The position numbers and the translations under genes are program-made. Of a DNA stretch of 64,000 nt, positions 40,973 through 55,421 are shown piece by piece (the stretch's first letter is position 1; every line of letters begins with the position of its first letter). A model generated the notes under the pieces. The model worked only from the letters and a program-made list of their open reading frames with translations, ran no database searches and was not told the DNA's origin. The stretch is from Oikopleura dioica (lineage: Eukaryota > Animalia > Chordata): assembly GCA_907165135.1 (NCBI GenBank), contig OU015567.1, positions 13,454,001 to 13,518,000 of the forward strand. The letters run 5' to 3'.

Positions 40973-43741
<2,769 letters not shown>

Positions 43742-46439: not shown

Positions 46440-46697
46440 TTCGTGGTCCCTTTTCTGTACATTTCTCTTCTCTTCAAACAATTCTATCAAGTGTTTCCAT
46501 GTCTTACCCAAATCTCTCCTTTCGCAGGTTATCCATTCTATCACTGAAAACACACATTCCAATTTCCTTCCAGTAATTTTAGTATTAGAGCATGCTAGCA
46601 ACAGTAATTTCTCTTTCAAGTTCCAAAAAGGTTCGCAATTGCAATTGAAAAACTCTTCTTTATCTTATTCGAATTTTCCTATTTTCTTGCAATCAGA

Positions 46698-47883
46698 ATG
46701 TCATACGGCAAAGTGCTAAGAAATTCCGTCGCTAAAAGAGTTCTCGATCTTCGCTCGGACACATTTACACTTCCTTCCGCCGCGATGCGCGCCAGAATGG
46801 CCGAGGCCATTTGTGGCGATGATGTTTACAAAGAAGACAGGACGATTATTGAGCTTGAATCTCGCCTTGCTGAGCTAACTGGACATGAAGGCGCATTGTT
46901 CGTCCTAACATGCACAATGGCTAATTTCCTTGGCTTGGCTGCAACTTGCAACCGCGGGGAAGAGGTTTTATGTGGCGATATGAGCCACATCGGGCTTTAT
47001 GAACAGTCGAATGTTTCTCAATTCACGGGTATTGGAATGCGTCAAGTAAAGAATCAGCCTGACGGCACAGTCTGCCTTGAAGATGTCCTTAGAAGAGGAT
47101 ACTTTTCAAACGATGACTTTCACATGTCGCATAGCAAAGATAGGATTTTGAGCAGTTTTCGAGTACTATGATTGTTTTTTGAATGTCTGAAAATCCTTTT
47201 TTACTGATTTGCGTTGAGAATACCCATAATTTCACCGGTGGAAAGCCGCTTTCTCTTGAATATCTTCAGGATCTTCGAAAACTATCATCGGAAAATGGCT
47301 GCAATGTTCACATGGATGGAGCTAGACTTGTAAACGCATCGATAGGCACCGGAATAACGCTGAAAGATTACTGCTCGCTAGTAGATACTGCAACCATGTG
47401 CTTTACGAAAGGAATGGGCTGTCCTTTCGGAGCAGCGCTTGTTGGAAACGAAGACGTGATTCAAAAGGCGAGGAGAATGAGAAAGGCAATCGGTGGTCAA
47501 TGGAGACAAGGAGGAATCGCGGCGGCGGCTGTTCTGGAAAGTTTAGACGACTTGTCTCCGATCGAAAATGATCATGAAATGGCGAAAGTATGGGCTTCTG
47601 CCATTCCAGCGCTCTCAAAGAAAATATCTGTGGATGCGCCACAAACAAATATCGTCATCTTCAAGTGCCAAGATGAAACGTCTGCGCTGGAGATTATTGA
47701 AAAGATGGCGCATGGCGAATTATCCGGTAATGATACAAATCATTAATAAGCTTCCTAAATTAAGCGTTCGTAGTTCTTCTTCAGCAAGGCGCTAACCCAG
47801 AAGATGTTCGTGCCGTCTTTCACAGATCAGCCGACTACTCGTTAATTTCCGAGGCAGTTGAAAAGTTGCAAAGTTTAATTTAG
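46698..47883 (+). CDS. THA1: Low-specificity L-threonine aldolase (PLP-dependent), 3 exons
   Basis: DLRSDTFT, GDDVYKED, CVENTHN, HMDGARL, CFTKG (PLP lysine), RKAIGGQWRQGG. Confidence 0.93.
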
Positions 47884-54554: not shown

Positions 54555-54645
54555 ACTCATCCCATTTTTGAGTCCGATTTCGATTGTCTAACAGGTAAGA
54601 ATCGAATCCACGCCTCCTTCTCTCCCATCCCTCTCGCCTCTCACA
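54555..54645 (+). ncRNA. Spliced-leader (SL) RNA gene; 40-nt exon 54555-54594, donor GTAAGA; 3' end approximate
   Basis: Exon sequence matches the O. dioica SL as I recall it, followed by a strong 5' splice site and located downstream of 5S. Confidence 0.9.
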
Positions 54646-55329: not shown

Positions 55330-55421
55330 TTGTGAGAGGCGAGAGGGATGGGAGAGAAGGAGGCGTGGATTCGATTCTTACCTGTTAGACAATCGAAATC
55401 GGACTCAAAAATGGGATGAGT
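55330..55421 (-). ncRNA. SL RNA gene, second copy (exon 55421-55382)
   Basis: Reverse complement of the first copy. Confidence 0.9.

Follow-up and report, generated by a model that had tools for sequence, protein, structure and literature searches.

Introns with AT-AC ends are a hallmark of the minor spliceosome, which larvaceans have lost: all U12-type small nuclear RNAs (snRNAs) have disappeared from the group (PMC13326754), and loss of the minor splicing apparatus has been reported for Oikopleura dioica (bioRxiv 10.1101/2022.09.24.509304). U2-type AT-AC introns are known as a kind and are very rare elsewhere (15 in human, 6 in mouse, 3 in fly, and 0 in both worm and Arabidopsis; PMC1557818), while A-C and G-G terminal pairs are isosteric (PMC13326754). 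Here we describe a 65-nt intron with AT-AC ends (intron 1) at positions 47140-47204 of a 64,000-nt window of the O. dioica genome (contig OU015567.1 of assembly GCA_907165135.1, positions 13,454,001 to 13,518,000; positions below count from the first base of this window), where it lies within a three-exon threonine aldolase gene (Pfam PF01212) on the plus strand of OKI2018_I69 chr2. We conclude, with a probability of about 0.8, that 47140-47204 is a genuine spliceosomal intron with AT-AC ends and most likely U2-type processing. New in this system, and unseen by an earlier sequence-only reading of the window, are an AA-AC allele, a conserved terminal hairpin helix, and an end motif common to AT-AC introns of the O. 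dioica genome.

The reading frames of the gene define the interval to be removed. Exon 1 is open from the ATG at 46698 in frame 0 to CAT AGC AAA G (AAA 47136-38, G 47139) and encodes the N-terminal half of threonine aldolase, to ...DDFHMSHSK; beyond 47139 the same frame runs into a TGA at 47169-71 (open reading frame [ORF] 46698..47171). The rest of the domain lies in a second frame (...LICVENTHNFTGG...), which is closed by a TGA at 47180-82 and from 47183 reads MSENPFLLICVENTHN. There is no AG dinucleotide in 47183-47216, and the first AG, at 47217-18, falls within the GAG codon of ENTHN. Two observations of the sequence-only reading, that exon 2 must begin after the TGA and that no AG precedes ICVENTHN, can thus be read directly in the sequence. 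The exons were searched separately, and no joined spliced protein was used as a query. Exon 1 matches PF01212 over profile positions 1-116 (E 1e-32) and the second ORF, comprising exon 2, over positions 129-285 (E 4e-42), the two matches covering the domain including the ENTHN strand; L-(allo-)threonine aldolases in the PDB are matched with E values down to 3e-26 and 1e-34, respectively. In the PDB alignments, K147 at the end of exon 1 and the codon at 47204-06 (Leu/Val) fall on adjacent residues of E. coli LtaE, 131 and 132, and the Aeromonas enzyme (3wgb) has the same contiguity across the junction, therefore exactly 65 nt must be removed. The gap-free removal that had earlier been proposed against LtaE agrees with these alignments. 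The excised segment opens with ATAGGA and closes with TTTTTTAC, spanning ATAGGATTTT to CCTTTTTTAC, and is present as a single copy according to BLAST against its own genome.

The position of both cuts was resolved using RNA from a sister lineage. A 324-aa protein (P0002; 79% identical), encoded by JGI contig Ga0193541_1005536 (L001), reads ...HMSHSKVICVENTHN... across the junction. The 40-nt leader exon of the window's spliced-leader genes recurs without change at bases 6-45 of L001, where it is joined to AATGTCG; L001 is therefore a mature trans-spliced mRNA. Three of its blocks match a Tara metagenome scaffold (L007) at 100%: L001 positions 42-488 correspond to 412-858, 489-1010 to 922-1443, and 1010-1033 to 1482-1505. 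Because the first two blocks abut without overlap, the intron is L007 859-921 without register ambiguity, and this orthologous 63-nt intron has been excised exactly. It reads AAAGGATTCC...AATTTTAC, starting with AAAGGATT and ending with TTTTAC, and the mRNA junction is AGCAAAG^TCATTTGCG (^ marks a splice junction or cut), where shifting either boundary by one base would change the mRNA sequence. The equivalent junction in the window is AAAG^TG, which makes the termini AT-AC, not GA-TA, and the junction codon GTG (Val). By orthology, the window lineage would thus be cut after G47139 and before T47205, yielding GTG (Val) and ...HMSHSK-V-ICVENTHN, with an expected mRNA junction of AGCAAAG^TGATTTGC. 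The homologues are consistent with Val here: Nymphon, Argonauta, and P0007 also have V, while M or L is present in other relatives.

The same intron recurs in five lineages with nearly constant ends. ATAGG stands at the same place in the window, in L012/L042, in L002/L003, and in L004/L005/L006/L016, and all of these introns close in TTAC; the termini are therefore AT-AC in the window, L012, L004, and L002 lineages, and AA-AC in the L007 lineage, where three more independent contigs have the same A at +2. The second intron position is thus variable, being T in four lineages and A in the lineage with the mRNA. The pattern A[T/A]AGGRTT...AAYCC...TTAC has been kept in all five lineages despite saturation of synonymous sites among lineages. 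Together, these data settle two matters that the sequence-only reading had raised. A hidden AG masked by a sequencing error is ruled out by five divergent lineages in independent assemblies, all of which close the intron in TTAC, and the alternative GA-TA register is excluded by the sister mRNA.

The gene itself is, judged by its substitution rates, under strong purifying selection: the ratio of nonsynonymous to synonymous substitution rates (dN/dS), calculated from concatenated exon pieces without the junction codon, is 0.042 against the closest lineage (L042; dS 0.48), and dS is saturated for the window gene versus both L004 and L007.

Coordinates of features in the window (positions counted from its first base)
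Feature	Position	Strand	Description
Probable spliced-leader trans-splice acceptor (AG 46695-96)	46695..46697	+	by orthology with the sister-lineage mRNA L001
Exon 1	46698..47139	+	147 codons and the first base (G) of a split Val codon
Intron of public model g7787.t1	47046..47269	+	GT-AG, 224 nt; the model protein P0001 reads ...GIGMRQ^DLRKLSS...
Intron 1	47140..47204	+	65 nt, AT...AC, phase 1; from frames and stops, gap-free PDB join, sister-lineage mRNA
5' arm of terminal helix, AGGATTTT	47142..47149	+	intron +3..+10; pairs with 47190-47197
3' arm of terminal helix, AAAATCCT	47190..47197	+	AAYCC block, invariant bar a compensatory change
Single-stranded U-run and TAC 3' end (TTTTTAC)	47198..47204	+	TTAC invariant in 5 lineages; same tail in the SUMO AT-AC intron
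Exon 2	47205..47726	+	opens with TG of the Val codon, then ICVENTHN...
Rival AG acceptor	47217..47218	+	unused as far as the evidence goes
Intron 2	47727..47773	+	47 nt, canonical GT-AG, phase 1; from frame analysis and mRNA L001 blocks
Exon 3	47774..47883	+	stop TAG 47881-83; matches the C-terminus of P0001 and P0002
Spliced-leader RNA gene	54555-54594	+	40-nt leader exon, then GTAAGA
Spliced-leader RNA gene	55382-55421	-	40-nt leader exon, then GTAAGA; inverted relative to the other copy

With no U12-type spliceosome in O. dioica, intron 1 is most likely handled by a permissive U2-type spliceosome. Compared with the U2-type consensus, the 5' site AAG^AUAGGA matches at -2, -1, +2, +3, and +5 and mismatches at -3 and +6, and the G at +4 can form a wobble with U1. 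Pyrimidines precede the 3' AC, with UCCUUUUUU in the window and UUU or CUU in all lineages. Exon 1 ends in AG and the intron has A at +3, as is found around the GA donors of O. dioica (PMC7072748). The T/A variation at +2 mirrors the tolerance of the species for G[ACG]-AG introns, and removal by the major spliceosome is therefore the best explanation. On this basis intron 1 is best read as a U2-type (type II) AT-AC intron, as the sequence-only reading had supposed, with U2 dependence inferred. In the mechanism that we propose, the A(+1)/C(-1) pair would stand in for the isosteric G/G pair of GT-AG introns, the donor AG^AUAGG would still pair with U1 at -2, -1, and +2 to +5, a short U-run would precede the terminal AC, and the free +2 (T or A) would fit the known G[ACG]-AG tolerance. 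The helix formed by +4..+8 and AAYCC, 7-9 nt before the 3' cut, would bring the two splice sites side by side.

Evidence for this helix comes from folding energies and from comparison of the lineages. In the window, the terminal duplex has an energy of -12.3 kcal/mol versus a shuffle mean of -4.5 (p about 0.001). In all lineages, pairing begins at +3 or +4 and involves a block whose end lies 5-8 nt from the 3' cut; the terminal duplex of intron 1 ranges across lineages from -7.2 to -13.4 kcal/mol, versus a shuffle mean of about -3 to -4.5 kcal/mol for the same introns, and the fraction of shuffles reaching the observed energy is 0.0005 to 0.04 in each lineage. Intron 2 of these genes, which is GT-AG, showed no terminal duplex in the same test. 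The core helix, in which +4..+8 (GGRUU) pairs with AAYCC (-13..-8), forms in all five lineages, and in L012, the closest lineage, A+6 is replaced by G while its partner U is replaced by C, a compensatory change from A:U to G:C. Inner pairs vary by lineage without losing complementarity, as with GACUUAU/AUAAGUC in L003. Between the synonymously saturated lineages the intron interior cannot be aligned, yet both end blocks are nearly invariant, and the helix, or the two blocks, are therefore constrained. Selection acts on the helix, which probably helps two weak splice sites to pair.

Similar ends occur in other introns of the same genome. A SUMO2-like gene contains a 65-nt AT-AC intron (L029 942-1006; G000:C2:3633733-3633797, plus strand) that reads ...GTCGTCCAG^ATAGGGTTACTCGA...AGTAACCCGCGTTTTAC^TTCAAAATC, with ends CAG^ATAGGGTTAC...GTAACCCGCGTTTTAC^TTC and an 8-bp terminal helix. 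Aligned with human SUMO2 PDB chains, its flanking exons make residues 22/23 contiguous without a gap. Another locus, L027, was considered as the SUMO gene and rejected: it encodes ubiquitin-L40, and its intron is of the ordinary GT-AG kind. The ends common to the aldolase and SUMO introns are AG^ATAGGRTT, a helix to AAYCC, N3-5, and TTAC. A genome search with the pattern ATAGGRTT N30-60 AAYCC N3-5 TTAC returned 7 matches versus 1 in the reversed control, comprising the aldolase intron, the SUMO intron, two segments whose removal joins ORFs, and three copies in a dispersed repeat. Removal of the first ORF-joining segment (61 nt; L033 1501-1561, minus strand; G000:C1:8901437-8901497) joins 50+123 codons, and that of the second (77 nt; L034 1501-1577, minus strand; G000:C1:9484706-9484782) joins 263+181 codons. 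Both share the motif ATAGGGTTTT...AAATCC...TTTAC; the exons flanking them matched no Pfam family, and they are candidate AT-AC introns on the grounds of ORF continuity alone. When the 5' motif and U-run were sought without the AAYCC block, 9 matches were found versus 6 in the reversed control, of which only the aldolase and SUMO introns restore ORFs, and the AA-AC version of the motif has two matches in the genome, neither restoring an ORF. Across nine versions of the helix, the pairing at +6 is A:U in five, G:C in two, and G.U in two, with the partner of +4 at -8 to -10. We tentatively entertain the possibility that O. dioica possesses a small AT-AC/AA-AC class (AG^AUAGGR, a +4..+8/AAYCC helix, and N3-5 UUAC^) that would be U2-spliced partly by shape and would have arisen after loss of the minor spliceosome, perhaps from a mobile hairpin module.

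Intron 1 is missing from four relatives: L014 (57% identical, larvacean-like) lacks it while having intron 2 at the same codon, L019 (larvacean-like) is intronless, and Nymphon and Argonauta have a single exon across ...TKVICLENTHN.... It is thus probably specific to the O. dioica complex and not an old U12-type relic. Intron positions in the aldolase gene turn over fast among larvacean-like lineages; for instance, L014 (1-300 and 1160-1513; ENA ERZ508537) has an extra intron 5' of ...MADITGKEAALFV, where O. dioica has none, and its introns are long and repeat-rich.

Several other explanations for these observations were weighed. That intron 1 is of U12 type, or a relic still handled by parts of the minor spliceosome, is favoured by its AT-AC termini, by ATA at +1..+3 and TT at +7,+8, which match RTATCCTT, and by the TCCTT near the 3' end in the window. 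The U12 donor core RTATCCTT is nevertheless lacking in ATAGGATT, where +4..+6 read GGA instead of TCC, as they do across all lineages; the remark of the sequence-only reading that the donor has no U12 consensus thus holds. No TCCTTRAY branch box lies 10-15 nt before the 3' end, where the TCCTT of the window (TCCTTTTTTAC) is not followed by a branch A, and the same region in other lineages (TCCTATTTTAC, TCCGAATTTAC, TCCAATTTTAC, and CCCTTCTTAC) does not conserve TCCTTRAY. Rfam models for U12 (RF00007), U6atac (RF00619), U11 (RF00548), and U4atac (RF00618) gave zero matches in the window's own assembly (4/4 null), in searches in which scoring was limited to the top 40-50 candidates and the minor snRNAs lacked a eukaryotic positive control, while the U2 model (RF00004) recovered 7 full-length copies at ~156 bits from the same assembly. 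We regard this absence as supporting evidence rather than proof, resting partly on the literature, which concurs with the earlier statement that O. dioica lacks a minor spliceosome. The intron position is also empty in the four relatives named above, and we give a U12-type origin practically no credence. Nearly as little can be said for a pseudogene or an assembly error at intron 1: the public annotation did fail to model the gene, but dN/dS is 0.042, all exons are open, the same structure occurs in at least 12 independent contigs from five lineages, and a sister-lineage mRNA exists. It is also very unlikely that the window transcript is spliced to the AG at 47217-18, using either a GA-AG intron at 47139-47218 (80 nt) or a GT-AG intron at 47163-47218 (56 nt), with a product that lacks VICVE or has DRILSSFR in its place. 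Both alternatives are frame-compatible, a branch-site-like tactgat lies 11 nt 5' of this AG, and GA-AG introns are common in O. dioica (PMC7072748); enumeration of alternative GN-AG and AT-AC pairs was not discriminating without scores. However, 47205-47218 evolves as coding sequence, with 3/3 differences from L012 at third codon positions and synonymous (TGATTTGCGTTGAG), and the AG is not conserved, being replaced in GAA of L012/L042 and GTGGAA of L002. No homologue departs from (V/L/M)(I/V)C(V/L)E before NTHN, and either alternative would remove or scramble the core strand adjoining the active-site His. A cDNA joined to this AG was one of the outcomes named by the sequence-only reading as refuting it; the sister-lineage mRNA does not use it and retains VICVE.

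The helix invites two further readings, one of mechanism and one of origin. Removal by a non-spliceosomal, hairpin-guided route, through an endonuclease and ligase or by structure-dependent excision like that of nonconventional introns in euglenids, draws on the fixed distances between the helix and both cuts (partner of +4 at -8..-10), which recall the +4..+6/-8..-6 pairing in Euglena (PMC11282704), and on the overlap of the helix with sites that snRNAs would need. We consider this improbable, given spliceosomal hallmarks at the ends (exon AG and an A(+1)...C(-1) pair compatible with U2-type catalysis), the U-run before the 3' end, and a free +2 as in O. dioica G[ACG]-AG introns. Moreover, the two cuts lie at unequal distances from the helix (2-3 nt and 7-9 nt), which sets them apart from bulge-helix-bulge and IRE1 sites, and the non-canonical introns of Fritillaria, which have inverted-repeat ends, require the U2-type spliceosome (PMC13326754). 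The second reading, a possibility that we hold with some doubt, concerns origin only and is compatible with spliceosomal removal: the hairpin could be the decaying inverted-repeat ends of a small transposon (introner-type gain), with no role in splicing. The intron is absent in four relatives, L014 among them retaining intron 2; unrelated genes have the same end sequence, beyond mere complementarity; TAC-ending non-canonical introns in Fritillaria have been ascribed to miniature inverted-repeat transposable elements (MITEs; PMC11282704); and a dispersed repeat with 13 or more copies has an ATAGGG...CCCTAT module in an 82-nt indel. This hairpin module (ATAGGGTTATTAC...ATAAATCCCTATTAC) occurs at L036 1491-1572 (G000:C4:1057602-1057683) and in at least 12 other copies, and the 82-nt stretch, found in most repeat copies, is lacking in the repeat copy that spans G000:C1:14875516-14875700; the common intron ends may derive from this module as a mobile source. 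Intron 1 is, on the other hand, a single copy, a search for its inverted-end pattern gave 2 matches versus 2 in controls and found no family with its ends, and no target-site duplication flanks it, such that of the features of transposon-derived introns only the inverted ends are present, while a repeat family and a target-site duplication were not found. Arms kept past synonymous saturation, a compensatory change, and lineage-specific inner pairs are also not expected from neutral decay. A hAT MITE within the window (42721-43604) was considered as a source and set aside, as its ends are unrelated.

Against the U2-type AT-AC reading stand, besides the scope of the Rfam searches, the following points. 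Word-based protein searches with the exon 2 ORF, P0002, and exon 1 did not find a cDNA of the window's own (Okinawa) lineage, recovering only the faulty public model and genomic ORFs. The public gene model skips the intron region. The 5' arm of the helix lies over the U1/U6 contact positions, and the likely branch region (YCUNAA) is next to the 3' arm or partly within it. Classical recognition would thus require the helix to be opened, and a positive role is not evident. Within the orthologous set there is a single clean compensatory change.

If intron 1 is indeed removed by the U2-type spliceosome, an essential-looking metabolic gene depends on an AT-AC intron, and the major spliceosome of O. 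dioica would accept the A...C pair; the AA-AC sister allele suggests that it would likewise tolerate one more departure from the consensus at this donor. Together with the end motif common to the aldolase and SUMO introns, the conserved helix offers a testable proposal for the way in which very weak splice sites are located. Gene prediction restricted to GT/GC-AG introns will repeat elsewhere in the O. dioica genome the kind of error seen at this locus, where the exon 2 ORF matches Oidioi.mRNA.OKI2018_I69.chr2.g7787.t1 (P0001, 304 aa) and is identical across their common part. This model, from an annotation made with AUGUSTUS (PMC8008620), places an intron from a GT at 47046 to an AG at 47268-69 and drops 53 codons, including the ENTHN active-site strand; its intron is an annotation artefact of a predictor unable to place a non-canonical intron, and the correct product should have 357 aa. 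In a related species, a transcript-like ORF (P0011, 208 aa, JGI/Logan) joins ...QGEEVLGGD to NYLGGIPLDL..., skipping ~70 residues including ENTHN, and may be a mis-spliced or alternative isoform.

At its 5' end, the window gene reads ...caatcag^aATGTCA, and by orthology its mRNA body would probably start at A 46697, one base 5' of the ATG. The aldolase mRNA L001, a marine metatranscriptome contig, is trans-spliced one base 5' of the ATG, and its leader is the same as that of the window, indicating that the sister lineage uses the same spliced leader.

Intron 1 can be compared with five described classes of intron. U12-type AT-AC introns have the same terminal dinucleotides, whereas here an RTATCCTT donor, a TCCTTRAY branch box, and minor snRNA genes were not found. 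Nonconventional introns of euglenids resemble it in a short end pairing (+4..+6 with -8..-6) that juxtaposes the splice sites (PMC11282704), but they belong to another lineage, have no fixed termini, and are removed by a debated mechanism, while the termini of the aldolase intron are fixed and suit a spliceosome. Type II AT-AC introns, such as those of human SCN4A/SCN5A (Sheth et al. 2006, PMC1557818), are alike in having AT-AC ends without U12 donor or branch motifs, a donor that partly resembles the U2-type consensus outside +1, and pyrimidines before the 3' end (PMC1557818). The known examples are exceedingly few (15 in human, 0 in C. elegans) and occur in genomes with a minor spliceosome, of which there is none here, and the aldolase intron differs from them in allowing A at +2, in its G at +4, in its conserved helix, and in sharing an end motif with other AT-AC introns.

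The two remaining classes are found in larvaceans. The G[ACG]-AG introns of O. dioica (about 11-12% of introns; PMC8008620, PMC7072748) share permissive U2-type machinery, exon AG, +3 A, and a free +2, but keep G+1 and the 3' AG, while the aldolase intron changes both terminal bases (A...C). The AG/AC and AG/AT introns of Fritillaria borealis (PMC13326754, PMC11282704) open with AG right after an exonic YAY, whereas the aldolase intron opens with AT or AA and has AG at +3,+4, its cut lying 2 nt upstream (AG^AT AGG). The Fritillaria introns also carry target-site duplications, which are absent here, where the upstream triplet is AAG in aldolase, CAG in SUMO and L033, and TAG in L034; extra U2AF paralogues tied to the 3' AC are a Fritillaria feature. 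The likeness lies in a larvacean host without a minor spliceosome, inverted-repeat ends, a lineage-specific position, an AG after the AT at the 5' end, and a YAY triplet, TAC, as the last three bases in all lineages as well as in the SUMO, L033, and L034 introns, and it ties O. dioica to Fritillaria, whose non-canonical splicing is far more extreme.

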